Source of the DNA: Ylistrum balloti
Lineage: Eukaryota
Length of the DNA: 64,000 nt
Assembly (NCBI RefSeq): GCF_031769215.1
Contig: NW_026782978.1
Location: forward strand, 62,001-126,000
Reading direction: 5' to 3'
The translations under genes were made by a program, and so were the position numbers. Each line of letters begins with the position of its first letter. Within the stretch, counting starts at the first letter, position 1. Positions 8,122 to 64,000 of this stretch are shown here, piece after piece. The notes beneath the pieces were generated by a model, which did no database searches, was not told where the DNA came from, and saw only the letters and a program-made list of their open reading frames with translations.

Positions 8122-8145
8122 AAAAAATCTCACACATATAAAAAT

Positions 8146-8877: not shown

Positions 8878-8911
8878 TATTATCTTTAGAAACAAAAACA
8901 AAATTTCTAAA

Positions 8912-14969: not shown

Positions 14970-14975
14970 AAAATA

Positions 14976-15400: not shown

Positions 15401-15425
15401 AGAAAAATGAAATCTATAATAAAAA

Positions 15426-15783: not shown

Positions 15784-15845
15784 ATTTTTTTTATATCTGT
15801 AAAATGATATAAAAAAATTTTCTCTTGCTAATAAAAAAATAAAAT

Positions 15846-17140
15846 ATGATGAACATTCTAAATTTTACTGAGGCTCCCATGAAGGATGAGAGCATCGAAG
15901 AATACGAACACTATGAGTACGATCCGATTACCGGTACGAATCTCAATAACCCAGGTGAGCTCAGGATCAATATTGAAACACAAGATCTGTTTACTCACCC
16001 AAGCGAGAGCTATCTGATCATCGAAGGGCGTCTGACAAAAACTGACGGGACCGCTTACGCAAACGATGATAACGTTACACTGACGAATAATGCTCTCATG
16101 TATCTTTTCAGCAACATCAAGTACCAGCTTTCAGGACAGGAGATTGAATCTCTCTTTCATCCAGGACAGGGTACAACGATGCTTGGTCTGTTGAAATATC
16201 CAGATGACTTCTCCAAGTCGCAGGGTTTGAATCAATTGTGATACAAGGACACATCAGCTGCAGCATCTGCAGCTGCAGCAGCAGGCAATGCCGGATTTAG
16301 CGTTCGCCAATCCTATATAACCAAATCTCCTGATCCAAAGGGCACATTTAGTTTCAGAGTACCACTCAAGCACATCTTTGGATTTTGCGAAGACTATGAC
16401 AAAATTGTGTATGGTATGAAACAAACCCTGACTCTGGTGCGGAAAACGGACAACGATGCGATCTTCAGGAATGCAAATGTTGATGATGGGAAAATTACCT
16501 TCGAAAAGGTGTCGTGGTTTATGCCTCATGTACTACCCGCAGATGCTGAAAAATTTCAGCTTTACAAGACACTCGATTCAAATGAGCTTCTACCCGTAAT
16601 GTACAGGATCAGGCAATGTGATTACATCTCCATACCACAGTCAACTAGCTTCACCTGGAGACTATCTGTCAAATCAGCGCCTGAAAGACCGCGCTATATC
16701 ATTGTCGGTTTCCAAACTGACAAAGACGGTGACCAAGAGCAGAATCCTTCCATCTTTGACAACGTCAATGTGAGGAATATATTTGTCATGCTAAACTCGG
16801 CTAGATACCCCGCAGTTGACTACAACCTCTCCTTTCCCAAACAGCAATTCAGTCGGGCGAACGGTGATGTAGCAGCCTTCAGGTCCAAGTTTTACAACAT
16901 GGACGAGTTGGTGTCAAACCCCAACATCACCCCGCCGATTACAAGACACTTTTCCCACTGTTTGTGTTCGACGTCAGCAAGCAGAGTGAGCGACTGAAGA
17001 CCGCAGTCACTGACATCCAAATAAAAACTCAGTTTAATGCCAACGTGCCAGCGGGTACCGAAGCATTTGCTGTTGTGATTAGTAACAAGATGATAAACTT
17101 CAAGACCGATGGGAAGAAGGTAAACGTTGTATATAGCTAG
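15846..17140 (+). pseudogene. Major capsid protein (double jelly-roll, hexon/PY); premature TGA at 16239-16241 and a frameshift near 16935
   Basis: DESIEEYE..EY.P.TGTNLN.PG..RI.IE.QD.F..P.ESYL, VPLKHIFGFCEDY.K..YG.K..L.LVR, PRYIIVGFQT and LF.FDVSKQSE motifs. Confidence 0.9.
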
Positions 17141-17198
17141 ATTTCTACATTTCTTGAAAATGACTTTAAGAAAATAAAAATCTATAATAAAAAAAACA

Positions 17199-17516
17199 AT
17201 GTTGAAACTGTCTGAATTGAAAACAATTCTTCGTGAGAATAAAATCAAAGGTTATTCTCATTGCGGCAAGAAGCGGCTGATCGAGCTGTTGAAAGGAAAG
17301 GAATTAATACCAGAGGAACCACCCAAACCAGTGAAGACAAAGAAAGAGGTAGATCCAATGGCAGTTAGAAATAACCCCAAACCTGTTGTGTTGAGGGATG
17401 TTGATACTGGAGAGGAGATTACATTTCCATCCATTTATAAGGCATCTCAATTCATAGACAAATCCTCGAGGATAATAACCTTTTGGGATGGAAGGGTGTG
17501 GAAAAGCAAGATGTAA
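17199..17516 (+). CDS. Small putative DNA-binding protein (Rho-N/HeH-like helix pair plus NUMOD1-like HTH)
   Basis: LSELKTILRENKIKGYS..KK.LIELL and TGEEITFPSIYKASQFI patterns. Confidence 0.55.
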   Translation: MLKLSELKTILRENKIKGYSHCGKKRLIELLKGKELIPEEPPKPVKTKKEVDPMAVRNNPKPVVLRDVDTGEEITFPSIYKASQFIDKSSRIITFWDGRVWKSKM

Positions 17517-17622
17517 GCAAAAAAAAATGTTGTATGTGGGTTAACATATACAACATTCATGAAAGAATAATTTTTTTTTGAAAATGACTTATAGAAAAAA
17601 AAATCTATATATAATAAAAACA

Positions 17623-20600
17623 ATGAGTCTTTTCAGAAGAATTAGTAATGCGGCTATGAATGCTGCAACAAACATTGCTAGAGGAGCAAGACGACTGGCA
17701 TCGGCTTTCATCCCACAGAGGAATCCTCCAGATCAAAATTTCTTAGATGCAGATGTACCTAGCATCAATGTGCCGACTCTTCAAACTGTCCTTATCCCTA
17801 CAACCAGGGACAAGGTTAAACAAAAGGTAAATAAATCGATCAAAGCTGCTGTAGATTGGGTTGAATGGCTGCATGATGCAGACAGAGAAGTTGTTAAGAA
17901 GGCCCCATCGAAATTAAAAGCCTTGAAGGAAAAAGTAGATGCTTTATTCAGAAAGCAGCAGATGTTTGAAATCAGAGAGACAAGATCTGCTCTGAGGAAA
18001 TTTACGACTCAATATACCATAGATGGCAGAGAGGGGTTTGATGCTCAATCGTTTCTCAACACAGCCCGACAAAATGTAGTTAACCTCTTGAGAGGAATCC
18101 GAGGCACTAAGGTAAAGCTAATTCTTAGATGTAACATGGAAAAAGTGAACCTTGTCAGTGCCTCGGAAACAATCGTAGAGCCTGCAGCCTTTCACTCTAA
18201 TGTCGAGATTAACCTCGATGGAACAGATGCAGATGAGCTGTATGATGCAATGGTTGATAGAGTCATGGAGGCCATGGCGACATTCCAGTTGCGAGGCAGC
18301 AACTGGACATTTAAATCTATCATTGCCATTGAAATTCATACAGTTGCTTATGAACCGTTGAGGGGGGGCTCTTACATCCCTACTCCGGAGGCCCTTGCAC
18401 ATCCTAAAATGGGAGTGATCAATGTAAAAAATGATGACAACAGATGCTTCCTCTGGGCACTGGCTCGAGCATTACATCCCGTAGAACGTGATGCTTGCCG
18501 CATAACTAAGATGCTCAGAATGCAAGCAGAAAAACTCAACATGGACGGTATTGATTACCCAGTTAGTCTTAAGACAATAGATCATGTCGAGAAGCAAAAC
18601 CCAGACATATCTATTACTGTCTTTGGCTATGAAACTAGTGTTCACCCCCTCCGAATAAGCAAACACGTTGATAGGGTAACAATAAACCTTTTATTGATCA
18701 CTGATGGGGAAAAGCAGCATTACTGCGTCATCAAAGACAAGAGCCGTTTGTTGTCCAGCCAACCGGAAACCACCAACACAAAAATTATTACTGTCTCAGA
18801 TGTTTGAACCCCTTCTACTCACAGGAATCGTTGAATAAGCACATGGAATACTGTTATTCAAACGAGGCCGTCAAGATAGAGATGCCAGAAGAGGGTTCGA
18901 CCATTTCGTTTGCACATACACAAGTCCATGAGAGTGCCGTTCACAGTGTATGTTGACTTTGAATCTTTCATCAAACCCGTAGATACGTGTGAACCGTGTC
19001 CGGGAAAGAGCTACACGAAGAAATACCAGAAACACACCCCATCGAGCTTTTGTTACAACATCAAATGCTTTGATGATGGTGTCTTCTCTAAAGATCCGGT
19101 TACCTACACCGCGAAAACTGACGACGAAGATGTCTCCCAAATATTCGTAGAAATGTTGGAGAAAGACATCAAAGAAATTGGCAAAATCCCTGCGAAACTA
19201 ATGATTTTTGGGGAAAATGACCGCAAACAATTCCAAAAGACGACAAAGTGCTGGATCTGCGAAGGTGAGTTCGGTAAGGATGACAAGAAGGTGAGAGATC
19301 ACTGTCACGCTACTGGGAAATACCGAGGTGCAGCTCACAATAGTTGTACCTTGCAGTACAAGAAGCCGAAGTTCACTCCCGTGGTGTTCCACAATCTGAG
19401 CGGCTATGACAGTCATCTGTTCGTCAAGAACCTCGGTAAAACTGAGGGGAACATCAACTGCATCCCGAACAACGAGGAAAAGTACATCAGCTTCACCAAG
19501 GAGGTTGTTGTCGGTTCTTATACTAGCAAGGACGGGAAAGAGAAGGATGTTAAGCACCAGCTCAGATTCATCGACAGCTTCAAGTTCATGGCCTCTAGCC
19601 TGGATAAGCTGTCCGGTAATCTGGATCAGGACTGCTTCACTAACACTTCGAAGTACTATAACGGAAAACATCTAGACTTACTAATGAGAAAGGGTGTCTA
19701 CCCATATGAACTCAAAAGACTAGATGAAACAGCCCTTCCACGAAAAGTAGCGTTCTACTCCAGACTCATTGGAGAAGGGATTAGTGACGATGCACAAACT
19801 GTGTGGAAAGAGTTTGGCATGAAGTCACTCAGGGACTACCACGAACTGTACAACCAGTCGGACGTGTTGCTCTTGGCAGATGTCTTTGAGAACTTTAGAG
19901 ACGTCTGCATCAAGAACTACGATCTTGACCCTGCCTGGTATTATACAGCGCCTGGACTAGCATGGGACGCTGCCTTGAAAATCACCGAAGTGAAGTTGGA
20001 GCTGTTATCAGATCCAGACATGTTGCTCATGGTGGAGAAAGGTATCAGAGGCGGGATATCGATGATCAGCAACAGATATGGCAAAGCAAACAACCCATAC
20101 ATGGGTGAAACATTCAACCCCCATGATCCTGCGAAGTATATTGCCTATTTGGATGCCAACAATCTCTATGGTTGGGCCATGAGCAAACCGCTCCCTACAC
20201 ACGGATTCGGGTGGATGACAGACAGTGAACTGGACTCTTGGAAGAACCACAGCTGTATACTGGAGGTTGACCTTGAATATCCAAAGGATCTGCATGATCT
20301 CCACAATGACTATCCGCTCGCTCCAGAAAGTCTCAAAGTCCATAATGTGGAAAAGCTTATTCCCAATCTCAATGACAAAACTAACTATGTCATTCACTAC
20401 GAGAACCTCAAACTATACGAGGGCTTGGAAATGAAGATTACAAAGATCCACAGGGGCATCAGGTTCGAGGAAAGTGCATGGTTGAAGCAATACATCGACC
20501 TGAACACCAATCTCCGAGCAGAGGCAAACAATGAGTTTGAAAAGGACTTTTTCAAGGTCATGAACAACTCTGTTTTCGGAAAGACTATGGAGAACATTAG

Positions 20601-21333
20601 GAGCCGAGTGGATATCTGACTAGTCAACGACGAGACAAAAGCGAAGAAGTTGGCAGCAAAACCCAATCTTAAACATTGCATCATCTTCGACGAGAACCTG
20701 GTTGCCGTACATATGAAAAAGACGAACCTGAAGTTCAACAAGCCCGTTTATCTCGGGATGTGCATCCTCGATCTGAGCAAGACGTTGATGTACGACTTCC
20801 ATTACAATTACATGAAGACAAAGTACGGAGAAAAGTCAAAACTCCTGTTTACCGATACCGATTCCTTGGCATACGAAATCCAGACGGAGGACTTTTACAA
20901 GGACATCTCTGGTGACGTAGCAGCCAAGTTTGACACCAGCAACTTCCCAAAGGATCACCCATCGGGCATCGAAGTCGGTCGTAACAAGAAAGTGGTGGGG
21001 ATGTTCAAGGACGAGGCAGGAGGTAAGATCATCCGAGAATTCGTGGGATTGAGAGATAAGTTGTACAGTTACAAGTTGCTTGAGGGGTATGAGGAGAAGA
21101 AGTGTAAGGGGGTGAAAAGGTCCGTTGTCAGAAAGAGTATTTCGTTTGAGGATTACAAGAAATGTTTGTTTACGGGTGAGGATCAGTTGCGAAAGATGAA
21201 CGTCATCAGGAGCCACTGTCATGATGTGTACACCGAAGAAATTAACAAAATAGCTCTTTCGGCAAATGACGACAAGCGAATCATCCTCCAGGACGGGATG
21301 CGCACACTAGCCCACGGACACTTTAAACTTTAA
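17623..21333 (+). pseudogene. polB: Protein-primed family B DNA polymerase (pPolB) with N-terminal terminal-protein/vOTU-like region, zinc finger and EndoVII-like insert; two frameshifts and one nonsense codon
   Basis: Exonuclease motifs VYVDFES, FHNLSGYDSH and YNQSDV. Polymerase motifs YLDANNLYGWAM, KVMNNSVFGKT, FTDTDS and KLYSY/KKCKGV. Also NDDNRCFLW..HY, CLRC..H..C and DHCH. Breaks near 18770 and 18910, and TGA at 20617-20619. Confidence 0.95.
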
Positions 21334-21348
21334 TAGATATATATAAAA

Positions 21349-21687
21349 ATGAACATTTCAGTGGGAAAAGTCGTTCTGCCAAATAAACCGCTAAGTAATA
21401 TCGAGTTAACGAGGGCTGCAGATGAATTGAAAATACCAAATTTTAGAGGAGTATTTCTGTGCGATACACTTCCGAAGAGACCAAAGAGAAATGAATGTGG
21501 GATTCTGAATTTAGATTCTAGTGACGGAGGAGGAACGCACTGGACCGCCTGGTACAAACAAGGAAAAAATAAATACTATTTCGATAGCTATGGCATACAA
21601 CCTCCGAATGAGTTGATATCCTATTTGAAGCGAGGGATCTTGTATAATAATATATATATTAAAAAACATGCAAATTTGGATATATGA
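21349..21687 (+). pseudogene. Adenain-like maturation cysteine protease, C-terminally truncated
   Basis: FRGVF..D.LP, ILNLDSS.GGGTHW.AW and YFDSYG supply the catalytic His and Asp. The sequence breaks after LYN, before the Q..CG catalytic Cys motif. Confidence 0.88.
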
Positions 21688-22226
21688 CGTCAGAGTACAA
21701 CATCCCACCACCAGAACCCGGTGTGTCTCTGTCGTACGTCAATAAGAATTTCCAAAGAAAAGCTGATGTGACTAAATTAGAGATGGATATCCAGGATCTA
21801 AGAGTCAAGTATTCTCAGCTATTAATGAATACACAAAAATTACAAAGAAAAATGAATAAAAAATATATAACTATCTGGGCTGAAGAAAAAGGTGGACTGG
21901 TGAAAGGGAAGTACGAATACTCGTTCGGTGATGGTGCAACAGGTAAAAACGCTGGCTATACCGTGCTAGCACCATCTAAAGTTTTGAAAATAGGTACGTC
22001 GGTTACAACACCAGAATCCACTCCCGTAGAGGCTGGTGTAGTCCTCGTGTTAAATGGTAGTAAAACTCAATGTAAAATTTTAAAGCCACAAGGAGAATTT
22101 AATCACGTTTCGGATGTGAGAGGAATCAGTTTAAATGTAGGTGATGTGCTCAACTTTGTAACCAACGTAACAACAACAAAAATTACCGGAGCTATTATTT
22201 CACTTCTATTAGAAATTAATTTATAA
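21684..22226 (+). CDS. Putative spike/decoration protein (coiled coil plus beta-sandwich head)
   Basis: Shares its N-terminal module with the 22248 gene. It has a heptad-rich segment followed by a beta-rich domain. The original start at about 21668 appears to have lost 8 nt. Confidence 0.55.
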   Translation: MTSEYNIPPPEPGVSLSYVNKNFQRKADVTKLEMDIQDLRVKYSQLLMNTQKLQRKMNKKYITIWAEEKGGLVKGKYEYSFGDGATGKNAGYTVLAPSKVLKIGTSVTTPESTPVEAGVVLVLNGSKTQCKILKPQGEFNHVSDVRGISLNVGDVLNFVTNVTTTKITGAIISLLLEINL

Positions 22227-22247
22227 AAATATACATATAAAAAAAGA

Positions 22248-23365
22248 ATGCCTGTTCACAAATTTGGATATATGACGTCAGAGTACAACATCCCACCACC
22301 AGAGCCCGGTGTGTCTCTGTCGTACGTCAATAAGAATTTTCTACGAAAGAATGGGTCTACCGTAACTGGTTCCATCGATATGGCGGGAAATACGTTAACG
22401 AACGTGTCGGATCCTGTGAACGCGCAAGACGTCTCTACTAAGAATTATGTCGATGGTCAAATTGTTAACCCTACACCCGTAACCACCCTCGTTACAGCAG
22501 GTTTGTATAATCTGGATGATACGTATCATATTATTCTAGCAGATACCACCAGCGGAAACGTTGTGCTAAAATTTCCGCCAACAGCTACCGTCGGTAAAGA
22601 ATACTTAGTTATTCACGAAAAATACGGTAATCAATGTTCAATGTGGGATAATGAGAATAGAATAGTAAATCCGTATGACAGTACTGATACATCTGTTGGG
22701 ACTTTACAATCTTTGATTGTTTTTGGTGGAGAATCGAGAACATTTACGTGGAGTGGTAAACATTGGATGGTTACTTCAAAGTCCATTCGTGAGGTAGCTA
22801 GAGTTAGTAAGAGAGGAGACACTATGACTGGATCTTTGCATATGGGAGGCCATGAAATAACTGGCCTATCCTTGGCTCAACCCTCGACTGATGGTCACGC
22901 CGCAACAAAAGGTTATGTGGATGCTGTTTTAGTTGACTCGTGGAGAATGTATGGTCCATATACTTATTTGCACACTCAAGCAGAAACTATCACCCCATCA
23001 ACTTTACCTTTTATAACACTAACGATCTCAAATGTAAAGGCTGGGGATTATTTAGAGGTTTTCGTCTACCTGGGTGTGGATTATAGGAGTTACTATTTTA
23101 TTGGTGATTTGGTGATGGTAGACGTTGAGACGGGGGATGGGTTGTTTGAAAACGCGCCCCTGATAAGTCAGTTTGCGGCTGATAGTAAAGGTACTAAGGT
23201 AAAAAAAAAACGGCCTACATGATGTATATGTCACCCGTTCCTATTACTCGTGATGCAAATGCTGTATGCACAATTAAGGTGAAAGCAAAAACAATATCAC
23301 CAAGAGTATATCTAGAAAACCGGTGTAAATTATATGTGAAGCACATGAACAAATTTACTGCCTGA
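22248..23365 (+). CDS. Fibre-like protein with phage tail-fibre-type repeats; the frame changes at the A10 run at 23201-23210
   Basis: LTNVSDPVNAQDVSTKNYVD, ADTTSGNVVLKFP and KRGDTMTGSLHMGGHEITGL..P..DGHAATKGYVD. The -1 frame stays open for about 50 codons to the TGA at 23363-23365. Confidence 0.7.
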
Positions 23366-46659: not shown

Positions 46660-47779
46660 TATGCCGATACTTGTACCGCTGTTCTGATGACGGCTAGTCT
46701 AAGAAAGTTCAGAATCTACCATTACTCCAATGTCCTTTTCCTTATCAGTGACTGTTAGACTATTCCCCAGTAATCGGTACTTTGCTCCTGTTCCATCTAT
46801 CTGTGCAGTATTTTGTCCGACCGACATATGTTTGCATTTATCCGGGTGTAATTTTAGTAGCCATTTCTAACTCCATTCTCCCATGGTATTTAGATCTTCT
46901 TGAAGTATTACTTTGTCTTCTTCTCTCTTGATTACCCTGAATTTTTTTGTATCGTCTACAAATAGATACATATCTGATTTTACAATATCTGGTAAATCTG
47001 GAAAATGACAAACAGCAAGGGGCCTAGGACTGATCCCTGGGGAATAGCAGATGATACGTCATTCCATTCAGACTGTTTGTCATTTATTCTTACATGCTGT
47101 TTTCTCCCATTCAAAAAAAAAAACTGTCTATCCATCTGACAATTGGTTCCGAAATATTGTATGATCTAATTTTACTTAATAATCTTCTGTGTGGTACTCT
47201 GTCAAAAGCTTTCTGATAATCCATATATATGCAATCAATTCCATGACCTTTATCTATATCCTCTGGCCATTTATCCAGTACATCTAACAACTGAATTGAA
47301 GTTGAACGGTCCGATATAAATCCATATTGCCTTGAAGAGAAAAGATTGTGTGATCTCATGAAGTCATTTATATGCCCGCGAATGATTGTTTCCATTACTT
47401 TACATACCACAGATGTAAGACTGACAAGTCTGTAATTCCCTTTTGTTCTCTTGTCTCTTAAATATTGCACACACTCTTGCATGCTTCCAATCAGCAGGAA
47501 TGGATCCCTCTCGAAGAGTTTGGTTGAATATCAGTGCTAGTGGTATCGCTATGGTGGAGTCTTCTTCAGGAATTCTGGATGCATGTTATCTAAGCCTGGT
47601 GATTTATTTGGATTTAAGTTATTGAGTACCTTGGTAACCATTTCATTGGTTATCACAAGTGTTTTCATATTGCTGCTTGTTTTAATGTGCGTTAGTTCAG
47701 GTATTTCTCCTTTTTCTTCTTTAACAAATACGCTTTGATAGAAGTTTGCAAGTCCTTTCTTCAGATTTTTTGTGCGCAT
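46660..47779 (-). mobile_element. CR1-clade LINE ORF2 fragment (reverse transcriptase), decayed
   Basis: NPNKSPGLD, NYR.VSLTSVVCK.ME, QYGF, YMDYQKAFDRVPH, IPQGSVLGPLLF and YLFVDDTK motifs, with frameshifts. Confidence 0.9.
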
Positions 47780-47988
47780 GGGTGTGTATGGGGGTCATAT
47801 GTGTAATTATAACAAGCTACAATTCTGTTTTGGCTCATTTCATGTTGAATGTTGTTTTAAATACGAATAAAATAAAAGTTACTGTTCGAGACTAATTAAG
47901 AAAAGTGTGTTTTTAAAAGAGGTTTTATCATAAACATGAATTTCAATAAGACGATGCATTCATGAATGATTGTGCTAATATTGGACCA

Positions 47989-48262: not shown

Positions 48263-48844
48263 ATGGATGAAAGACGGCGACTTCTCCAGCGGACTCAAGC
48301 TCCGACGTCTCGGAGTAACGTTTGTCCAGGAGTTGACGATACAACTGACAGACGATCTAAACTTGGAAGAGCAGCGATCTTGTTGACAGTAGTTTTCGAG
48401 AGATGTGTGTTTTATGGTCTGACTGGGAACCTTGTTTTGTATTTTAATTTGGACCCGTATCAATGGACGGCTTATAACGCTTTGCTGGTTTCCTATTTCT
48501 TCACTGGAATCTCATTCCTGACATCCTTTGTCGGTGGTTTTCTGGGCGATGCACTGTTCGGACGTTTTAAGACTTTAATGTTGTCTTTCATTATTTACTG
48601 TGTAGGTTATATTTTCCTTCCAGTGCTCTCCTACAACGACTATAAAAACTCAGATAACAGGGACAACCAAACATTCTCTGCAGTGTGCTGGCCAATTAGT
48701 AAAACGACAAATGGCACAGACGCTGATTCTATGCCAGCACCTTTCGAGGAGCCTTGCTCACTCACTGCATACCTCGTATTATTTGTCATTGCTGTAGGTA
48801 CAGGGATATTCCGAGCAAACATGCCTCCATTTGGAGGAGACCAG
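48263..48844 (+). CDS. SLC15A4: SLC15A4-like proton-coupled oligopeptide/histidine transporter (POT/PTR2), first coding exon
   Basis: ExxER-like VFERCVFYG, GGFLGDALFGRFKT and GTGIFRANMPPFGGDQ. The exon is 194 codons and ends at the donor CAG|GTTTGT. Confidence 0.88.
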
Positions 48845-50084: not shown

Positions 50085-50256
50085 ACAAGAGGTGAAGGTC
50101 ACACAACATTTTTTAACTGGTACTACTGGTCAGTGAACATTGGTACTCTCCTCGCCCTATCGGTCATCACCTGGGTCCAACAAACACATTCCTTCTTTAT
50201 GGGCTTCCTTTTAGCAACCACCTGCCTTGGAGTGTCCTTCCTCATATTTATGACAG
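50085..50256 (+). CDS. SLC15A4: SLC15A4-like transporter, second coding exon
   Basis: Acceptor TTTTCCACAG, in phase with exon 1. Reads TRGEGHTTFFNWYYWSVNIGTLLALSVITWVQQTHSFFMGFLLATTCLGVSFLIFMT-G (FFNW.YWS.N.G motif). Donor ACAG|GTAAGT. Confidence 0.9.
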
Positions 50257-53200
50257 GTAAGTCTACTAGGGAAAACCAGCCTTGGACTGTCCATAATATT
50301 TCTGACAGGTAGGTCTAATAGGGACCACCTGCCTTGGAGTGTCCTTCCCCATATTTCTGACAGGTAAATCTAATAGGGACCACCTGCCTTGGAGTGTCCT
50401 TCCTCATATTTCTGACAGGTAAATCTAATAGAGACCACCTGCCTTGGAGTGTCCTTCCTCATGTGTCTGACTATAGGTCTAATAGGGACCACTTGCCTTG
50501 GAGTGTCCTTCCTCATGTGTCTGACAGGTAGGTCTAATAGGGACCACTTGCCTTGGAGTGTCCTTCCTCATGTGTCTGACAGGTAGGTCTAATAGGGATG
50601 GAGTGTCCTTCCTCGTATTTCTGACAGGAAAATCTAATAGAGACCTCCTGCCTTGGAGTGTTCTTCCTCATGTGTCTGACTATAGGTCTAATAGCGACCA
50701 CTTGCCTTGGAGTGTCCTTCCTCATGTGTCTGACAGGTAGGTCTAATAGGGACCACCTGCCTTGGAGTGTCCTTCCTCATATTTCTGACAGGTAAATCTA
50801 ATAGGGACCACCTGCCTTGGAGTGTCCTTCCGCATGTGTCTGACAGGTAAATCTAATAGGGACCACCTGCCTTGGAGTGTCCTTCCTCATGTGACAGGTA
50901 AATCTGACAGGTATTTCTGACAGGTAAATCTAATAGGGACCACCTGCCTTGGAGTGTCCTTCCTCATATTTCTGACAGGTAAATCTAATAGGGACCACCT
51001 GCCTTGGAGTGTCCTTCCTCATATTTCTGACAGGTAAATATAATAGGGACCACCTGCCTTGGAGTGTCCTTCCTCATATTTCTGACAGGTAAATCTAATA
51101 GGGACCACCTGCCTTGGAGTGTCCTTCCTCATATTTCTGACAGGTAAATCTAATAGGGACCACCTGCCTTGGAGTGTCCTTCCTCATATTTCTGACAGGT
51201 AAATCTAATAGGGACCACCTGCCTTGGAGTGTCCTTCCTCATATTTCTGACAGGTAAATCTAATAGGGACCACCTGCCTTGGAGTGTCCTTCCTCATATT
51301 TCTGACAGGTAAATCTAATAGGGACCACCTGCCTTGGAGTGTCCTTCCTCATATTTCTGACAGGTAAATCTAATAGGGACCACCCCCCTTGGAGTGTCCT
51401 TCCTCATATTTCTGACAGGTAAATCTAATAGGGACCACCTTCCTTGGAGTGTCCTTCCTGATATTTCTGACAGGTAAATCTAATAGGGACCACCTTCCTT
51501 GGAGTGTCCTTCCTGATATTTCTGACAGGTAAATCTAATAGGGACCACCTGCCTTGGAGTGTCCTTCCTCATATTTCTGACAGGTAAATCTAATAGGGAC
51601 CACCTGCCTTGGAGTGTCCTTCCTCATATTTCTGACAGGTAAATCTAATAGGGACCACCTGCCTTGGAGTGTCCTTCCTCATGTGTCTGACAGGTAGGTC
51701 TAATAGGGACCACCTGCCTTGGAGTGTCCTTCCTCATGTGTCTGACAGGTAAATCTAATAGGGACCACCTGCCTTGGAGTGTCCTTCCTCATATTTCTGA
51801 CAGGTAAATCTAATAGGGACCACCTGCCTTGGAGTGTCCTTCCTCATATTTCTGACAGGTAAATCTAATAGGGACCACCTGCCTTGGAGTGTCCTTCCTC
51901 ATATTTCTGACAGGTAAATCTAATAGGGACCACCTGCCTTGGAGTGTCCTTCCTCATATTTCTGACAGGTAAATCTAATAGGGACCACCTGCCTTGGAGT
52001 GTCCTTCCTCATATTTCTGACAGGTAAATCTAATAGGGACCACCTGCCTTGGAGTGTCCTTCCTCATGTGTCTGACAGGTATAGGTCTAATAGGGACCAC
52101 CTGCCTTGGAGTGTCCTTCCCCATTTGCCTGACAGGTAAATCTAATAGGGACCACCTGCCTTGGAGTGTCCTTCCTCATGTGTCTGACAGGTAGGTCTAA
52201 TAGGGACCACCTGCCTTGGAGTGTCCTTCCTCATGTGTCTGACAGGTAAATCTAATAGGGACCACCTGCCTTGGAGTGTCCTTCCTCATATTTCTGACAG
52301 GTAAATCTAATAGGGACCACCTGCCTTGGAGTGTCCTTCCTCATATTTCTGACAGGTAGGTCAAATAGGGACCACCTGCCTTGGAGTGTTCTTCCTCATA
52401 TTTCTGACAGGTAGGTCTAATAGGGACCAACTGCCTTGGAGTGTCCTTCCTCGTGTGTCTGACAGGTAAGTCTAATAGGGACCACCTGTCTTGGAGTGTC
52501 CTTCCTCATGTGCCTGACAGGTAAATCTTATAGGGACCACCTGCATTGAAGTGTCCTTCCAAATATTTCTGACAGGTAAGTCTACTAGGGACCACCTGCC
52601 TTGGAGTGTCCTTCCTCATATTTCTGACAGGTAAATCTAATAGGGACCACCTGCCTTGGAGTGTCCTTCCTCATATTTCTGACTGTACGGCTGAGCGGGC
52701 CCAACTGCCGGGGACACTCCTTCCTCATAGTTCTGACAGGTAAATCTAATAGGGACCACCTGCCTTGGAGTGTCCTTCCTCATATTTCTGACAGGTAAAT
52801 CTAATAGGGACCACCTGCCTTGGAGTGTCCTTCCTCATATTTCTGACAGGTAAATCTAATAGGGACCACCTGCCTTGGAGTGTCCTTCCTCATATTTCTG
52901 ACAGGTAGGTCTAATAGGGACCACCTGCCTTGGAGTGTCCTTCCTCATATTTCTGACAGGTAAATCTAATAGGGACCACCTGCCTTGGAGTGTCCTTCCT
53001 CATATTTCTGACAGGTAAATCTAATAGGGACTACCTGCCTTGGAGTGTCCTTCCTCATATTTCTAACAGGTAGGTCTAATAGGGACCACCTGCCCTGGAG
53101 TGTCCTTCCTCATATTTCTGACAGGTAAATCTAATAGAGACCACCTGCCTTGGAGTGTCCTTCCTCATGTGTCTGACAGGTAGGTCTAATAGGGACCACC

Positions 53201-56200
53201 TGCCTTGGACCTGCCTTGGAGTGTCCTTCCTCATGTGTCTGACAGGTAGGTCTAATAGGGACCACCTGCCTTGGAGTGTCCTTCCTCATGTGTCTGACAG
53301 GTAAATCTAATAGGGACCACCTGCCTTGGAGTGTCCTTCCTCATATTTCTGACAGGTAAATCTAATAGGGACCACCTGCCTTGGAGTGTCCTTCCTCATA
53401 TTTCTGACAGGTAAATCTAATAGGGACCACCTGCCTTGGAGTGTCCTTCCTCATATTTCTGACAGGTAAATCTAATAGGGACCACCTGCCTTGGAGTGTC
53501 CTTTCTCATATTTCTGACAGGTAAATCTAATAGGGACCACCTGCCTTGGAGTGTCCTTCCTCATGTGTCTGACAGGTAGGTCTAATAGGGACCACCTGCC
53601 TTGGAGTGTCCTTCCCCATTTGCCTGACAGGTAGATCTAATAGGGACCACCTGCCTTGGAGTGTCCTTCCTCATGTGTCTGACAGGTAAATCTAATAGGG
53701 ACCACCTGCCTTGGAGTGTCCTTCCTCATATTTCTGACAGGTAGGTCTAATAGGGACCACCTGCCTTGGAGTGTCCTTCCTCATATTTCTGACAGGTAAA
53801 TCTAATAGGGACCACCTGCCTTGGAGTGTCCTTCCTCATGTGTCTGACTATAGGTCTAATAGGGACCACCTGCCTTGGAGTGTCCTTCCTCATATTTCTG
53901 ACAGGTAAATCTAATAGGGACCACCTGCCTTGGAGTGTCCTTCCTCATATGTCTGACAGGTAGGTCTAATAGGGACCACCTGCCTTGGAGTGTCCTTCCT
54001 CATATTTCTGACAGGTAAATCTAATAGGGACCACCTGCCTTGGAGTGTCCTTCCTCATATTTCTGACAGGTAAATCTAATAGGGACCACCTGCCTTGGAG
54101 TGTCCTTCCTCATATTTCTGACAGGAATGTCTAATAGGGACCACCTGCCTTGGAGTGTCCTTCCTCATATTTCTGACAGGTAAATCTAATAGGGACCACC
54201 TGCCTTGGAGTGTCCTTCCTCATATTTCTGACAGGTAGGTCTAATAGGGACCACCTGCCTTGGAGTGTCCTTCCTCATATTTCTGACAGGTAAATCTAAT
54301 AGGGACCACCTGCCTTGGAGTGTCCTTCCTCATATTTCTGACAGGTAAATCTAATAGGGACCACCTGCCTTGGAGTGTCCTTCCTCATATTTCTGACAGG
54401 TAAATATAATAGGGACCACCTGCATTGAAGTGTCCTTCCTAATATTTCTGACAGGTAAATCTAATAGGGACCACCTGCCTTGGAGTGTCCTTCCTCATAT
54501 TTCTGACAGGTAGGTCTAATAGGGACCACCTGCCTTGGAGTGTCCTTCCTCATGTGTCTGACAGGTAGGTCTAATAGGGACCACCTGCCTTGGAGTGTTC
54601 TTCCTCATGTGTCTGACAGGTAAATCTAATAGGGACCACCTGCCCTGGAGTGTCCTTCCTCGTTTGTCTGACAGGTAAATCTAATAGGGACCACCTGCCT
54701 TGGAGTGTCCTTCCTCATATTTCTGACAGGAATGTCTAATAGGGACCACCTGCCTTGGAGTGTCCTTCCTCATATTTCTGACAGGTACCTATAATAGGGA
54801 CCACCTGCCTTGGAGTGTCCTTCCTCATATTTCTGACAGGTAGGTCTAATAGGGACCACCTGCCTTGGAGTGTCCTTCCTCATATTTCTGACAGGTAAAT
54901 CTAATAGGGACCACCTGCCTTGGAGTGTCCTTCCTCATGTGTCTGACTATAGGTCTAATAGGGACCACCTGCCTTGGAGTGTCCTTCCCCATTTGCCTGA
55001 CAGGTAAATCTAATAGGGACCACCTGCCTTGGAGTGTCCTTCCTCATGTGTCTGACAGGTAGGTCTAATAGGGACCACCTGCCTTGGAGTGTCCTTCCGC
55101 ATGTGTCTGACAGGTAAATCTAATAGGGACCACCTGCCTTGGAGTGTCCTTCCTCATATTTCTGACAGGTAAATCTAATAGGGACTACCTGCCTTGGAGT
55201 GTCCTTCCTCATATGCCATATTTCTGACAGGTAGGTCTAATAGGGACCACCTGCCTTGGAGTGTCCTTCCTCATATTTCTGACAGGTAGGTCTAATAGGG
55301 ACCACCTGCCTTGGAGTGTCCTTCCTCATGTGTCTGACAGGTAGGTCTAATAGGGACCACTTGCCTTGGAGTGTCCTTCCTCATGTGTCTGACAGGTAAA
55401 TCTAATAGGGACCACCTGCCTTGGAGTGTCCTTCCTCATATTTCTGACAGGTAGGTCTAATAGGGTAAATCTAATAGGGACCACCTGCCTTGGACATATT
55501 TCTGACAGGTAAATCTAGGGACCACCTGCCTTGGAGTGTCCTTCCTCATATTTCTGACAGGTAAATCTAATAGGGACCACCTGCCTTGGAGTGTCCTTCC
55601 TCATGTGTCTGACTATAGGTCTAATAGGGACCACCTGCCTTGGAGTGTCCTTCCTCATATTTCTGACAGGTAAATATAATAGGGACCACCTGCCTTGGAG
55701 TGTCCTTCCTCATATTTCTGACAGGTAGGTCTAATAGGGACCACCTGCCTTGGAGTGTCCTTCCTCATATTTCTGACAGGTAGGTCTAATAGGGACCACC
55801 TGCCTTGGAGTGTTCTTCCTCATATTTCTGACAGGTAAATCTAATAGAGACCACCTGCCTTGGAGTGTCCTTCCTCATGTGTCTGACAGGTAAATCTAAT
55901 AGGGACCACCTGCCTTGGAGTGTCCTTCCTCATGTGTCTGACAGGTAGGTCTAATAGGGACCACCTGCCTTGGAGTGTCCTTCCTCATGTGTCTGACAGG
56001 TAAATCTAATAGGGACCACCTGCCTTGGAGTGTCCTTCCTCATATTTCTTTCTGACAGGTAAATCTAATAGGGACCACCTGCCTTGGAGTGTCCTTCCTC
56101 ATATTTCTGACAGGTAAATCTAATAGGGACCACCTGCCTTGGAGTGTCCTTCCTCATATTTCTGACAGGTAAATCTAATAGGGACCACCTGCCTTGGAGT

Positions 56201-59200
56201 GTTCTTCCTCATTTTTCTGACAGGTAAATCTAATAGAGACCACCTGCCTTGGAGTATTCTTCCTCATGTGTCTGACTATCGGTCTAATAGGGACCACCTG
56301 CCTTGGAGTGTCCTTCCTCATGTGTCTGACAGGTAAATCTAATAGGGACCACCTGCCTTGGAGTGTCCTTCCTCATATTTCTGACAGGTAGGTCTAATAG
56401 GGACCACCTGCCTTGGAGTGTCCTTCCTCATATTTCTGACAGGTAAATCTAATAGGGACCACCTGCCTTGGAGTGTCCTTCCTCATATTTCTGACAGGTA
56501 GGTCTAATAGGGACCACCTGCCTTGGAGTGTCCTTCCTCATGTTTCTGACAGGTATGTCTATTTGGGACCACCTGCCTTGGAGTGTCCTTCCTCATTTGT
56601 CTGACAGGTAGGTCTAATAGGGACCACCTGCCTTGGAGTGTCCTTCCTCATGTGTCTGACAGGTAGGTCTAATAGGGACCACCTGCCTTGGAGTGTCCTT
56701 CCTCATGTGTCTGACAGGTAAATCTAATAGGGACCACCTGCCTTGGAGTGTCCTTCCTCATATTTCTGACAGGTAAATCTAATAGGGACCACCTGCCTTG
56801 GAGTGTCCTTCCTCATATTTCTGACAGGTAGGTCTAATAGGGACCACCTGCCTTGGAGTGTCCTTCCTCATATTTCTGACAGGTAAAGGTCTAATAGGGA
56901 CCACCTGCCTTGGAGTGTCCTTCCTCATGTGTCTGACAGGTAAATCTAATAGGGACCACCTGCCTTGGAGTGTCCTTCCTCATGTGTCTGACAGGTAGGT
57001 CTAATAGGGACCACCTGCCTTGGAGTGTCCTTCCTCATATTTCTGACAGGTAAATCTAATAGGGACCACCTGCCTTGGAGTGTCCTTCCTCATATTTCTG
57101 ACAGGTAAATCTAATAGGGACCACCTGCCTTGGAGTGTCCTTCCTCATTTGTTTGACAGGTAAATCTAATAGGGACCACCTGCCTTGGAGTGTCCTTCCT
57201 CATATTTCTGACAGGAAGGTCTAATAGGGACCACCTGCCTTGGAGTGTCCTTCCTCATATTTCTGACAGGTAAATCTAATAGGGACCACCTGCCTTGGAG
57301 TGTCCTTCCTCATATTTCTGACAGGTAAATCTAATAGGGACCACCTGCCTTGGAGTGTCCTTCCTCATGTGTCTGACAGGTAGGTCTAATAGGGACCAAC
57401 TGCCTTGGAGTGTCCTTCCTCATGTGTCTGACAGGTAAATCTAATAGGGACCACCTGCCTTGGAGTGTCCTTCCTCATATTTCTGACAGGTAGGTCTAAT
57501 AGGGACCACCTGCCTTGGAGTGTCCTTCCTCATGTGTCTGACAGGTAGGTCTAATAGGGACCACCTGCCTTGGAGTGTCCTTCCTCATGTGTCTGACAGG
57601 TAGGTCTAATAGGGACCACCTGCCTTGGAGTGTCATTCCTCATATTTCTGACAGGTAAATCTAATAGGGACCACCTGCCTTGGAGTGTCCTTCCTCATAT
57701 TTCTGACAGGTAACGACCACCTGCCTTGGAGTGTCCTTCCTCATGTGTCTGACATAGGTCTAATAGGGACCACCTGCCTTGGAGTGTCCTTCCTCATATT
57801 GTCTGACAGGTAAATCTAATAGGGACCACCTGCCTTGGAGTGTCCTTCCTCATGTGTCTGACAGGTAGGTCTAATAGGGACCACCTGCCTTGGAGTGTCC
57901 TTCCTCATGTGTCTGACAGGTAGGTCTAATAGGGACCACCTGCCTTGGAGTGTCCTTCCTCATGTGTCTGACAGGTAAATCTAATAGGGACCACCTGCCT
58001 TGGAGTGTCCTTCCTCATATTTCTGACAGGTAAATCTAATAGGGACCACCTGCCTTGGAGTGTCCTTCCTCATATTTCTGACAGGTAAATCTAATAGGGA
58101 CCACCTGCCTTGGAGTGTCCTTCCTCATGTGTCTGACTATAGGTCTAATAGGGACCACCTGCCTTGGAGTGTCCTTACTCATATTTCTGACAGGTAAATC
58201 TAATAGGGACCACCTGCCTTGGAGTGTCCTTCCTCATATTTCTGACAGGTAGGTCTAATAGGGACCACTTGCCTTGGAGTGTCCTTCCTCATGTGTCTGA
58301 CAGGTAAATCTAATAGAGACCACCTGCCTTGGAGTGTTCTTCCTCATGTGTCTGACTATAGGTCTAATAGGGACCACTTGCCTTGGAGTGTCCTTCCTCA
58401 TATTTCTGACAGGTAAATATAATAGGGACCACCTGCCTTGGAGTGTCCTTCCTCATGTGTCTGACAGGTAAGTCTAATAGGGACCACCTTCCTTCCTCAT
58501 GTGTCTGACAGGTAAATCTAATAGGGACCACCTGCCTTGGAGTGTCCTTCCTCATGTGTCTGACAGGTAAATCTAATAGGGACCACCTGCCTTGGAGTGT
58601 CCTTCCTCATATTTCTGACAGGTAAATCTAATAGGGACCACCTGCCTTGGAGTGTCCTTCCTCATATTTCTGACAGGTAAATCTAATAGGGACCACCTGC
58701 CTTGGAGTGTCCTTCCTCATGTGTCTGACAGGTCTAATAGGGACCACCTGCCTTGGAGTGTCCTTCCTCATGTGTCTGACAGGTAGGTCTAATAGGGACC
58801 ACCTGCCTTGGAGTGTCCTTCCTCATGTGTCTGACAGGTAAATCTAATAGGGACCACCTGCCTTGGAGTGTCCTTCCTCATATTTCTGACAGGTAAATCT
58901 AATAGGGACCACCTGCCTTGGAGTGTCCTTCCTCATATTTCTGACAGGTAGGTCTAATAGGGACCACCTGCCCTGGAGTGTCCTTCCTCATATTTCTGAC
59001 AGGTAAATCTAATAGGGACCACCTGCCTTGGAGTGTTCTTCCTCATGTGTCTGACTATAGGTCTAATAGGGACCACCTGCCCTTGAGTGTCCTTCCTCAT
59101 GTGTCTGACAGGTAGGTCTAATAGGGACCACCTGCCTTGGAGTGTCCTTCCTCATGTGTCTGACAGGTAAATCTAATAGGGACCACCTGCCTTGGAGTGT

Positions 59201-62200
59201 CCTTCCTCATGTGTCTGACAGGTAGGTCTAATAGGGACCAACTGCCTTGGAGTGTCCTTCCTCATGTGTCTGACAGGTAAATCTAATAGGGACCACCTGC
59301 CCTGGAGTGTCCTTCCTCATATTTCTGACAGGTAAATCTAATACAGACCTCCTGCCTTGGAGTGTCCTTCCTCATTTGTTTGACAGGTAAATCTAATAGG
59401 GACCACCTGCCTTGGAGTGTCCTTCCTCATATTTCTGACAGGAAGGTCTAATAGGGACCACCTGCCTTGGAGTGTCCTTCCTCATATTTCTGACAGGTAG
59501 GTCTAATAGGGACCACTTACCTTGGAGTGTCCTTCCTCATGTGTCTGACTATAGGTCTAATAGGGACCACCTGCCTTGGAGTGTCCTTCCCCATTTGCCT
59601 GACAGGTAAATCTAATAGGGACCACCTGCCTTGGAGTGTCCTTCCTCATGTGTCTGACAGGTAGGTCTAATAGGGACCACCTGCCTTGGAGTGTCCTTCC
59701 TCATGTGTCTGACAGGTAAATCTAATAGGGACCACCTGCCTTGGAGTGTCCTTCCTCATGTGTCTGACAGGTATCTCTAATAGGGACCACCTGCCTTGGA
59801 GTGTCCTTCCTCATGTGTCTGACAGGTAAATCTAATAGGGACCACCTGCCTTGGAGTGTCCTTCCTCATATTTCTGACAGGTAGGTCTAATAGGGACCAC
59901 CTGCCTTGGAGTGTCCTTCCTCATATTTCTGACAGGTAAATCTAATAGGGACCACCTGCCTTGGAGTGTCCTTCCTCATGTGTCTGACAGGTAGGTCTAA
60001 TAGGGACCACCTGCCTTGGAGTGTCCTTCCTCATGTGTCTGACAGGTAGGTCTAATAGGGACCACCTGCCTTGGAGTGTCCTTCCTCATGTGTCTGACAG
60101 GTAAATCTAATAGGGACCACCTGCCTTGGAGTGTCCTTCCTCATATTTCTGACAGGTAGGTCTAATAGGGACCACCTGCCTTGGAGTGTCCTTCCTCATG
60201 TGTCTGACAGGTAAATCTAATAGGGACCACCTGCCTTGGAGTGTCCTTCCTCATGTGTCTGACTATAGGTCTAATAGGGACCACCTGCCTTGGAGTGTCC
60301 TTCCTCATATTTCTGACAGGTAAATCTAATAGGGACCACCTGCCTTGGAGTGTCCTTCCTCATATTTCTGACAGGTAGGTCTAATAGGGACCACCTGCCT
60401 TGGAGTGTCCTTCCCCATTTGCCTGACAGGTAAATCTAATAGGGACCACCTGCCTTGGATTGTCCTTCCTCATGTGTCTGACAGGTAGGTCTAATAGGGA
60501 CCATCTGCCTTGGAGTGTCCTTCCTCATGTGTCTGACAGGTAAATCTAATAGGGACCACCTGCCTTTGAGTGTCCTTCCTCATGTGTCTGACAGGTAGGT
60601 CTAATAGGGACCACTTGCCTTGGAGTGTCCTTCCTCATGTGTCTGACATAGGTCTCTGACCACCTGCCTTGGAGTGTCCTTCCTCATTTGTTTGACAGGT
60701 AAATATAATAGGGACCACCTGCCTTGGAGTGTCCTTCCTCATATTTCTGACAGGTAGGTCTAATAGGGACCACCTGCCTTGGAGTGTCCTTCCTCATGTG
60801 TCTGACAGGTAGGTCTAATAGGGACCACCTGCCTTGGAGTGTCCTTCCTCATGTGTCTGACAGGTAAATCTAATAGGGACCACCTGCCTTTGAGTGTCCT
60901 TCCTCATATTTCTGACAGGTAGGTCTAATAGGGACCACCTGCCTTGGAGTGTCTTTCCTCATATTTGTGACAGGTAGGTCTAATAGGGACCACCTGCCTT
61001 GGAGTGTCCTTCCGCATGTGTCTGACAGGTAAATCTAATAGGGACCACCTGCCTTGGAGTGTCCTTCCTCATATTTCTGACAGGTAGGTCTAATAGGGAC
61101 CACCTGCCCTGGAGTGTCCTTCCTCATATTTCTGACAGGTAAATCTAATAGGGACCACCTGCCTTGGAGTGTCCTTCCTCATTTGTCTGACAGGTAAATC
61201 TAATAGGGACCACCTGCCTTGGAGTGTCCTTCCTCATGTGTCTGACAGGTAGGTCTAATAGGGACCAACTGCCTTGGAGTGTCCTTCCTGATGTGTCTGA
61301 CAGGTAAATCTAATAGGGACCACCTGCCTTGGAGTGTCCTTCCTCATGTGTCTGACAGGTAAATCTAATAGGGACCACCTGCCTTGGAGTGTCCTTCCTC
61401 ATGTGTCTGACAGGTAAATCTAATAGGGACCACCTGCCCTGGAGTGTCCTTCCTCATGTGTCTGACAGGTAAATCTAATAGGGACCACCTGCCTTGGAGT
61501 GTCCTTCCTCATATTTCTGACAGGTAGGTCTAATAGGGACCACCTGCCTTGGAGTGTCCTTCCTCATATTTCTGACAGGTAGGTCTAATAGGGACCACCT
61601 GCCCTGGAGTGTCCTTCCTCATATTTCTGACAGGTAAATCTAATAGGGACCACCTGCCTTGGAGTGTCCTTCCTCATGTGTCTGACAGGTAGGTCTAATA
61701 GGGACCACCTGCCTTGGAGTGTCCATCCTCATGTGTCTGACAGGTAAATCTAATAGACCACCTGCCTTGAGTGTCCTTCCTCATGTGTAGGGACCACCTG
61801 CCTTGGAGTGTCCTTCCTCATGTGTCTGACAGGTAAATCTAATAGGGACCACCTGCCTTGGAGTGTCCTTCCTCATATTTCTGACAGGTAGGTCTAATAG
61901 GGACCACCTGCCCTGGAGTGTCCTTCCTCATATTTCTGACAGGTATCTAATGACAGGTAGGTCTAATAGGGACCACCTGCCTTGGAGTGTCCTTCCTGGT
62001 GTGTCTGACAGGTAAATCTAATAGGGACCACCTGCCTTTGAGTGTCCTTCCTCATATTTCTGACAGGTAGGTCTAATAGGGACCACCTGCCTTGGAGTGT
62101 CCTTCCTCATGTTTCTGACAGGTAGGTCTAATAGGGACCACCTGCCTTGGAGTGTCCTTCCGCATGTGTCTGACAGGTAAATCTAATAGGGACCACCTGC

Positions 62201-64000
62201 CTTGGAGTGTCCTTCCTCATGTTTCTGACAGGTAGGTCTAATAGGGACCACCTGCCTTGGAGTGTCCTTCCTCATGTGTCTGACAGGTAGGTCTAATAGG
62301 GACCAACTGCCTTGGAGTGTCCTTCCTCATGTGTCTGACAGGTAAATCTAATAGGGACCAACTGCCTTGGAGTGTCCTTCCTCATGTTCCTCGTTTGTCT
62401 GACAGGTAAATCTAATAGGGACCACCTGCCTTGGAGTGTCCTTCCTCATGTGTTTCTGACAGGTAGGTCTAATAGGGACCACCTGCCTTGGAGTGTCCTT
62501 CCTCATGTGTCTGACAGGTAAATCTAATAGGGACCACCTGCCTTGGAGTGTCCTTCCTCATATTTCTGACAGGTAGGTCTAATAGGGACCACCTGCCTTG
62601 GAGTGTTCTTCCTCATATTTCTGACAGGTGAATCTAATAGAGACATCCTGCTTTGGAGTGTTCTTCCTCATGTGTCTGACTATAGGTCTAATAGGGACCA
62701 CCTGCCTTGGAGTGTCCTTCCTCATGTGTCTGACAGGTAGGTCTAATAGGGACCACCTGCCTTGGAGTGTCCTTCCCCATTTGCCTGACAGGTAGATCTA
62801 ATAGGGACCACCTGCCTTGGAGTGTCCTTCCTCGTGTCTGACAGGTAGGTCTAATAGGGACCACCTGCCTTGGAGTGTCCTTCCCTATTTTCATGACAGG
62901 TAAATCTATTAGGGACCACCTGCCTTGGAGTGTCCTTCCTCATATTTCTGACAGGTAGGTCTAATAGGGACCACCTGCCTTGGAGTGTCCTTCCTCATGT
63001 GTCTGACAGGTAGGTCTAATAGGGACCACCTGCCTTGGAGTGTCCTTCCTCATGTGTCTGACAGGTAAATCTAATAGGGACCACCTGCCTTGGAGTGTCC
63101 TTCCTCATATTTCTGACAGGTAAATCTAATAGGGACCACCTGCCTTGGAGTGTCCTTCCTCATATTTCTGACAGGTAGGTCTAATAGGGACCACCTGCCT
63201 TGGAGTGTTCTTCCTCATATTTCTGACAGGTAAATCTAATAGAGACCACCTGCCTTGGAGACCACCTGCCTTGGAGTGTCCTTCCTCATGTGTCTGACAG
63301 GTATGTAGGGACCACTTGCCTTGGACATGTGTCTGACAGGTAAATCTAATAGCGACCACTTGCCTTGGAGTGGCCTTCCTCATGTTTCTGACAGTTTAAT
63401 ATAATAGGGACCACCTGCATTGAAGTGTCCTTCCTAATATTTCTGACAGGTAAATCTAATAGGGACCACCTGCCTTGGAGTGTCCTTCCTCATATTTCTG
63501 ACAGGTAGGTCTAATAGGGACCACCTGCCCTGGAGTGTCCTTCCTCATATTTCTGACAGGTAAATCTAATAGAGACCACCTGCCTTGGAGTGTCCTTCCT
63601 CATGTGTCTGACTATAGGTCTAATAGGGACCACCTGCCTTGGAGTGTCCTTCCTCATGTGTCTGACAGGTAGGTCTAATAGGGACCACCTGCCTTGGAGT
63701 GTCCTTCCTCATGTGTCTGACAGGTAAATCTAATAGGGACCACCTGCCTTGGAGTGTCCTTCCTCATATTTCTGACAGGTAGGTCTAATAGGGACCACCT
63801 GCCTTGGAGTGTCCTTCCTCATGTGTCTGACAGGTAAATCTAATAGGGACCACCTGCCTTGGAGTGTCCTTCCTCATGTGTCTGACAGGTAGGTCTAATA
63901 GGGACCACCTGCCTTGGAGTGTCCTTCCTCATATTTCTGACAGGTAGGTCTAATAGGGACCACCTGCCTTGGAGTGTCCTTCCTCATATTTCTGACAGGT
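50217..64000 (+). repeat. 55-bp tandem array, about 250 copies and running off the window; unit ACCACCTGCCTTGGAGTGTCCTTCCTCATATTTCTGACAG|GTAAATCTAATAGGG
   Basis: Periodicity is direct (for example CACCTG at 50941 and 50996). The first unit is the exon 2 end plus the intron start of SLC15A4. Confidence 0.98.

Follow-up and report, generated by a model that had tools for sequence, protein, structure and literature searches.

A 17.4-kb minisatellite spanning the exon 2/intron 2 junction of an SLC15A4-like gene in the saucer scallop Ylistrum balloti

The window analysed here is a stretch of 64,000 nucleotides (nt) from the saucer scallop Ylistrum balloti, a pectinid bivalve (assembly GCF_031769215.1, contig NW_026782978.1, positions 62,001 to 126,000). 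It carries the first two coding exons of an SLC15A4-like gene together with a tandem array of 55-bp units, the first of which spans the boundary between exon 2 and intron 2 (Table 1). Both exons matched Pfam PF00854 (PTR2/POT; E 6e-15 for exon 2), and a search of solved structures returned SLC15A4 (8cni_B) as the top hit for each of them (E 1e-24 for exon 1 and 1e-13 for exon 2), followed by SLC15A3, with the alignment of exon 2 to SLC15A4 extending through its last residues. An exhaustive protein search with exon 1 led to the "solute carrier family 15 member 4-like" protein of Pecten maximus (74% identity), and a search with this P. maximus protein identified scallop orthologues in Mizuhopecten yessoensis and Y. 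balloti. The exon chains of these three orthologous genes were rebuilt to translate exactly to the annotated proteins. Exons 1 and 2 of the window proved 100% identical to the annotated Y. balloti SLC15A4-like protein (P0152), which, with the exact exon chain, bears out the assignment of 50085-50256 to exon 2 in a first-pass annotation made from the sequence alone. Judged by these matches, the host gene is an SLC15A4/PHT1-type peptide/histidine transporter gene. Its coding sequence is under purifying selection in all pairwise scallop comparisons (ratio of nonsynonymous to synonymous divergence, dN/dS, 0.12-0.15; dS > 1).

Coordinates outside the window are given on the gene loci of Y. balloti (L002, taken from contig JAUZWB010000396.1 of GCA_031769215.1; window position = L002 + 45262), P. 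maximus (L001) and M. yessoensis (L003). The window and contig JAUZWB010000396.1 overlap by 18,738 nt with zero mismatches. In the Y. balloti exon chain, exon 2 corresponds to L002:4823-4994 and exon 3 begins at L002:22923, giving an intron 2 of 17,928 nt.

Tandem Repeats Finder reported the 55-bp period in two segments, 50217-50890 (12.5 copies, 85% matches, 4% indels) and 50912-64000 (238.3 copies, 91% matches), the second of which runs off the end of the window. The array starts 40 nt upstream of the end of exon 2, inside the open reading frame that ends ...TTT ATG ACA G/GTAAGT at 50256/50257 (a slash marks the splice junction). The unit at this junction agrees with the array consensus in 52 of its 55 positions, the differences falling at -7, +5 and +10 relative to the donor. 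The first-pass annotation had described a unit composed of exon end and intron start, with the real junction as its first copy, and this description is upheld. In the public contig the whole array extends from L002:4955 to ~22389 (17,435 bp, ~315 units) and accounts for 97% of intron 2; as its end lies beyond the window, the window holds about four fifths of it. The earlier figure of ~250 copies over 14 kb is thus correct for the window (~245-250 units) and too low as a total. On the 3' side, the array is followed by 533 nt of unique intron sequence and then by the exon 3 acceptor (TTTTCTGTCTTTAG/). Unit anchors numbered 313 over the whole array, with the next anchor exactly 55 bp on for 264 of them, while a substitution-only anchor gave 245 in the window, spaced at exactly 55 bp in 208 cases. 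ACAG/GT sites number 284 in the whole array including the real donor, leaving 283 decoys. In the window there are 231 such sites, of which 133 read GTAAAT, 80 GTAGGT and 4 GTAAGT, the rest being other variants. With 231 sites among ~245-250 window units, the claim that every copy keeps the donor does not hold. The full consensus GTAAGT, thought to mark the first copy only and to be rare downstream, is indeed rare (4 of 231) but not unique, as three decoys also possess it (Table 1).

In-phase units are ~94% identical pairwise, with no decay with the distance between units, and identity to the consensus drops along the array, being 97.7% close to the exon and 94.4% at the distal end. The edge units are the most divergent, which is usual for arrays homogenised from within; the last, degraded unit retains AAGTCT like the authentic junction, and homology ends at about +8. 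Four positions of the unit are highly polymorphic (-11, -9, +4 and +5). Those at +4/+5 are almost only AA (GTAAAT) or GG (GTAGGT), each one transition from GTAAGT, and the -11/-9 pair is nearly unlinked to this donor pair (counts 81, 55, 48 and 45). This weak linkage points to extensive exchange within the array. A 165-bp period was also reported by Tandem Repeats Finder (88% matches) but was rejected as a higher-order repeat, given that identity is independent of distance and the variable pairs are near-random. Coding potential was likewise rejected: the unit length is not a multiple of 3, the unit contains TGA, TAA and TAG, and all frames are closed within three units. Seeding of the array by a short direct repeat was considered, with CTTTTAGCA before the unit start and CTACTAGGG at intron positions +7 to +15 being alike at 5 of 9 positions, which is too weak to claim. 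The minus strand carries GGCAGGTGG, which is reminiscent of the classical minisatellite core.

Long tandem arrays are error-prone in assemblies, and this one is seen in one assembly only; its length could have been inflated or collapsed, or the exon could have been joined to an unrelated satellite. Such an artefact is considered very unlikely here. Homology runs unbroken from the conserved exon into the array, and the first units are the most irregular, as expected at an array edge. Many unit variants are present, and the longest exact internal repeat is 312 bp. The array also passes into unique intron sequence ahead of a proper exon 3 acceptor, and there are no N runs across the locus. The window is free of N and of case masking.

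The sequence shared by exon and array would, taken alone, also fit the capture of an exon end and donor by the gene from a pre-existing satellite. However, the 13 repeated codons TTCLGVSFLIFMT align with a conserved SLC15A4 helix of chicken and human (PAICIGISFMVFL and PTVCVGLAFVVFL) and also with mollusc and frog orthologues, so the shared 40 nt code for a helix conserved from molluscs to vertebrates. Exon 2 ends at the same position and in the same phase in P. maximus (...TTT CTC ACA G/GTCAAT) and M. yessoensis (ACAG/GTCAGT). When array length was compared at the orthologous loci, as had been suggested from the window sequence, the array was found to be absent from both, their intron 2 measuring 622 nt in P. 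maximus and 771 nt in M. yessoensis and containing no 16-mer of the unit. Outside the array, no such 16-mer occurs in any of the regions searched, namely the window, the remainder of the gene and the two orthologous loci. Exon capture is refuted by this comparison, and its probability is put at next to nil. The orthologue sequences show that the unit derives from the exon 2/intron 2 junction and not the reverse. At position -7 the array consensus has C (TTT CTG, Leu) and the orthologues read TTT CTC (Leu), whereas the present Y. balloti exon has A (TTT ATG, Met); with a Leu codon that matches the orthologues, unlike today's exon, the array appears to preserve the exon in an earlier form. The introns themselves cannot be aligned between scallops because synonymous divergence exceeds 1, and blastn of the unique intron tail against the orthologous introns gave chance-level matches only.

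The quality of the repeated sites was assessed with weight matrices built from the real sites of the three orthologous genes (20 donors, 20 acceptors). Decoy donors of the type CAG/GTAGGT, which are identical to real donors of these genes, score 13.6, and those of the type CAG/GTAAAT score 9.6; by comparison, real donors span 6.5-14.1, and random intronic GTs have their 99th percentile at 7.6. For the acceptor half, the scores are -0.2 in units of the ATATTT type and -5.7 in those of the ATGTGT type (81st and 51st percentile of random intronic AGs, respectively), with real acceptors ranging from -1.3 to 16.4 in a leave-one-out analysis (median near 9.6). Small as these matrices are (n = 20), they suffice to call the donor half strong and the acceptor half unconvincing. 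Use of decoy 2 would add 52 nt, causing a frameshift and a stop at codon 296, while all remaining decoys take in the in-frame TAG listed in Table 1 and would stop at codon 270, compared with 640 residues normally. A premature stop is therefore predicted for 283 of 283 decoys, in agreement with the early stop foreseen in the first-pass annotation for use of the next donor. Over the exon 2-exon 3 junction, the annotated protein of Y. balloti and those of its two orthologues share the sequence ...F(L/M)T/GSC(S/A)Y..., for which the first donor is required. RNA structure that might hide the decoys was examined and rejected, as neither four array units (z +1.4) nor the authentic junction (z +0.2) folds better than shuffled sequence.

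The same sites bear on the possibility that each unit is a ratchet point of recursive splicing, with an acceptor against the donor GTAAAT or GTAGGT. In that case the 18-kb intron would be removed stepwise, and splices to decoys would be corrected by re-splicing, by which the exact exon 2-exon 3 junction could in principle be regained. By definition, a ratchet point is an acceptor juxtaposed with a donor (PMC8605326; bioRxiv 10.1101/006163). Every intact unit carries ...TCCTTCCTCATATTTCTGACAG/GTA, and in the 284 units with CAG/GTA the acceptor lies directly against the donor (AG/GT). The pyrimidine fraction at -20 to -4 is 0.71-0.76 (real acceptors, 0.53-0.82), at or above the 90th percentile of random intronic AGs. 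Nevertheless, the scores of the acceptor half are below those of typical real acceptors, so that it is not comparable with them, and the CAG/GT juxtaposition comes simply from the normal exon end that was copied. The array is, moreover, lineage-specific, and the ancestral intron, at ~0.6 kb, had no need of a ratchet. Recursive splicing along the array is consequently regarded as very unlikely.

A function at the level of U1 small nuclear ribonucleoprotein (U1 snRNP) was also considered. By attracting U1 snRNP, the ~280 strong 5' splice-site motifs would modulate the host gene, for instance through protection of its long intron against premature cleavage and polyadenylation or through slowing or retention of the transcript, and selection would have weakened the decoys relative to the authentic site. 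This would be in keeping with the donor quality of the decoys and with their two main types lying one transition from GTAAGT, a sequence still present at the authentic site and, in part, at the far edge. It would also be in keeping with an authentic donor of perfect CAG/GTAAGT, compared with the weaker GTCAAT and GTCAGT of the orthologues. However, the location of two of the four polymorphic positions within the six donor bases has a chance probability of ~6% (a rough binomial estimate by hand), and the rarity of GTAAGT follows from the tight linkage of adjacent positions. The units are well mixed, with no conservation beyond homogenisation seen; the array RNA shows no structure in excess of that of shuffled sequence, and the orthologues manage without an array. 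A U1 platform, like stepwise splicing, is unsupported and is considered very unlikely.

Fifteen intronic arrays were identified in the three orthologous genes. Units demonstrably containing exon sequence occur in 3 of the 15, compared with 1.9 expected when each founding duplication is placed at random in its array-free intron (p = 0.29). An independent donor-junction array with a 60-bp unit is present in a different intron of the orthologous P. maximus gene. In another intron of the Y. balloti gene, 41-bp units carry ...TTTCTGTACCAG/GTAGATCATC, which places ~20 copies of the acceptor junction upstream of the authentic one. For intron 2 of Y. balloti, taken as an intron of ~550 bp, a random 55-bp duplication has a chance of ~18% of touching either junction and of ~9% of touching the donor alone. 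The runaway amplification of a splice site proposed in the first-pass annotation is upheld in so far as the array was amplified from the exon 2/intron 2 junction and not the reverse; the splice site as the driver is unsupported, given the ~9% chance of spanning the donor. Other arrays of P. maximus lie clear of junctions, consisting of 345 copies of 40 bp (13.7 kb) and 232 copies of 20 bp (4.8 kb), and indicate that kilobase-scale intronic minisatellites are common in this gene across scallops. Intron 4 of Y. balloti consists mostly of an array of 238 copies of 34 bp and of 73-bp arrays. It is unlikely that a process in scallops (and perhaps in amphioxus) preferentially starts tandem duplications at splice junctions, and/or that the array is a U1-recruiting or stepwise-splicing device for the host gene. 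Were duplication biased to junctions, breaks or template switches tied to co-transcriptional occupancy by the spliceosome or U1 may be the cause, with giant donor arrays as the extreme products.

The array is best explained as a giant junction-spanning intronic minisatellite that is a neutral by-product, with splicing from the most upstream donor, a reading to which a probability of roughly 0.8 is given. A founding tandem duplication of ~55 bp would by chance have straddled the donor of exon 2/intron 2. Such a duplication is expected to do no harm, since exon, donor and context all survive unaltered in the first copy. Expansion to ~315 units (17.4 kb) would have followed by unequal exchange or replication slippage, with the array tolerated and free to expand like the other intronic minisatellites of the gene. 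The splicing machinery would pick the most upstream donor, directly after a well-defined exon of 172 nt. This donor should be favoured by exon definition and by 5'-to-3' order of appearance, because it adjoins exon 2 and is the only perfect CAG/GTAAGT nearby; for the repeat in intron 7 of human F7, such a preference has been demonstrated by experiment. Transcripts spliced now and then at a decoy would carry a premature stop and would presumably be cleared by nonsense-mediated decay. A neutral origin is sufficient to explain the array.

Several observations weigh against this explanation. The copy number of the array is taken from one assembly. If three arrays that abut acceptors are added to those containing exon sequence, the count becomes 6 against 2.2 expected (p about 0.01-0.05); this comparison is post hoc, small and includes a homologous pair, and it leaves room for a junction-biased mutational process. 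The case for use of the first donor is built on the annotated model and on the homology of the proteins over the junction (...FMT/GSCSY...), and no short protein fragments of transcript origin spanning exons 2-4 were found when searched for. In addition, the annotated Y. balloti model is without the conserved exon 5 (MQTTFLLQGLHMKL...) that is present in both orthologues, and tblastn detected no trace of it in the 10.4-kb intron 4 of that model (L002:23684-34046). The exon may be lost, unassembled or eroded, and with its absence the integrity of the Y. balloti gene copy is not beyond doubt.

A number of other elements were identified in the window. A GC-rich tandem array with a 31-bp unit lies near its start and contains long spurious open reading frames on the minus strand. 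It is followed by a Polinton/Maverick-like element encoding an rve integrase, an A32-like packaging ATPase and a double jelly-roll capsid protein. A long open reading frame of this element is presumably its polymerase, as suggested by context and not by a domain match. The element is interrupted by a transposase gene of the Harbinger/PIF type, and retroelement reverse-transcriptase fragments are located ~0.5 kb upstream of the SLC15A4-like start codon.

Table 1. Features of the window and of the orthologous SLC15A4-like loci (L001, P. maximus; L002, Y. balloti; L003, M. yessoensis)
Feature	Position	Strand	Remarks
Coding exon 1, SLC15A4-like gene	48263..48844	+	194 codons, ATG to ...GDQ, then donor CAG/GTTTGT; Pfam PTR2; exact exon chain
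Coding exon 2	50085..50256	+	172 nt = 57 codons + 1 nt; FFNWYYWSVNIG motif; end ...CLGVSFLIFMT; exact exon chain
Founding unit	50217..50271	+	Last 40 nt of exon 2 + first 15 nt of intron 2; authentic donor CAG/GTAAGT at 50257
Proximal array, irregular units	50272..50911	+	Deletions, 45- and 13-bp sub-repeats; first in-frame TAG 50310-50312
Main array body	50912..64000	+	~238 units; continues 3.65 kb past window to L002:22389
Full-consensus CAG/GTAAGT decoys	52466..52471, also 52576 and 58468	+	Equal to authentic donor
Donor-junction array, P. maximus	L001:11476-12279		60 bp x 13; last ~45 nt of exon 5 + 14 nt of intron; AG/GTAAGT in every unit
Acceptor-junction array, Y. balloti, same gene outside window	L002:34400-35243		41 bp x 20; intron 5 end + first ~20 nt of exon 6
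Abutting array, M. yessoensis	L003:7821-9353		24 bp x 64 (...TATATTTGTAG); ends exactly at exon 5 acceptor
Abutting 30-bp repeats, P. maximus	L001:13618-13893		Exon 7 acceptor
Abutting 30-bp repeats, M. yessoensis	L003:13945-14004		Exon 7 acceptor
40-bp array, P. maximus	L001:14194-27897		Clear of junctions
20-bp array, P. maximus	L001:5435-10206		Clear of junctions
34-bp and 73-bp arrays, Y. balloti intron 4	L002:23684-34046		Span of intron 4
31-bp tandem array	149-3739		62-bp higher period; ~116 copies; 79-81% matches
Polinton/Maverick-like element	4258-23300		
rve integrase of this element	4258-4812	-	
A32-like packaging ATPase of this element	5436-6266		
Double jelly-roll capsid of this element	16242-16994		
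Long open reading frame of this element	18880-21330		Only domain match Endonuclease VII
DDE_Tnp_4 transposase gene	10201-12363	-	Interrupts Polinton/Maverick-like element
Reverse-transcriptase fragments	46841-47794	-	Pfam RVT_1

The array described in the first-pass annotation has precedents: the class, in which the first unit lies over an exon-intron boundary, is already known, and the Y. balloti array is an extreme member whose scale is new. No such arrays in bivalves were found in the library of papers searched. The array amounts to a natural stress test of 5' splice-site choice, in which 283 donor-grade decoys, some of them identical to real donors of the family, stand behind one authentic donor in a gene under purifying selection. 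Arrays of this kind can also mislead gene prediction and intron-length statistics in bivalve genomes.

It has been described that intron 7 of human F7 contains a 37-bp repeat whose first element lies over the exon-intron boundary, and that its pseudo-sites are functional but silent, the most upstream donor being used; only pseudo-sites with a perfect consensus could shift splicing at all (PMC1557585). Further human cases are IFI6 (6-16), CBS intron 13, LMNB2 and PDGF, and the 25 pseudo-sites of 6-16 make it the largest example in that study, with the two nearest pseudo-sites also used in 6-16 and CBS (PMC1557585). As in these genes, the first monomer of the Y. balloti array spans the boundary and the donor is repeated in the intron. 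Unlike F7, which has 5-9 repeats with 4 nt of exon, the scallop array consists of ~315 units over 17.4 kb with 283 decoys and 40 nt of exon in each unit, occurs in a mollusc and is known here from sequence. The choice of one donor among ~250 near-identical ones, to which the first-pass annotation had drawn attention, does involve donor-grade decoys, but such a choice has already been dissected experimentally in F7. Should the first donor indeed be used cleanly, the F7 rule that the most upstream site wins, established with up to 8 decoys, would also hold in a mollusc and with decoys in the hundreds.

Ratchet points of Drosophila and vertebrates are single sites in long introns with strong acceptors (bioRxiv 10.1101/006163; PMC8605326). 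The Y. balloti units share with them the AG/GT juxtaposition after pyrimidines and differ in that the motif comes from an exon end, has a poor acceptor half and recurs every 55 nt in a young array. A closer parallel in invertebrates is found in the amphioxus "mirages" of Adh3, the globins BflGb6 and BflGb9, troponin C and PGBD5, which are minisatellite-like duplications of exon-intron boundaries that leave normal splicing intact. They occur on both donor and acceptor sides in repeat-rich introns and show concerted evolution inside the array, with divergent edge units (PMC3087553, PMC3902484). The Y. balloti array is likewise a tandem boundary duplication in an invertebrate with divergent units at its edges; unlike the mirages, which have few units (3-6 in the globins), it is about two orders of magnitude larger and belongs to a bivalve.

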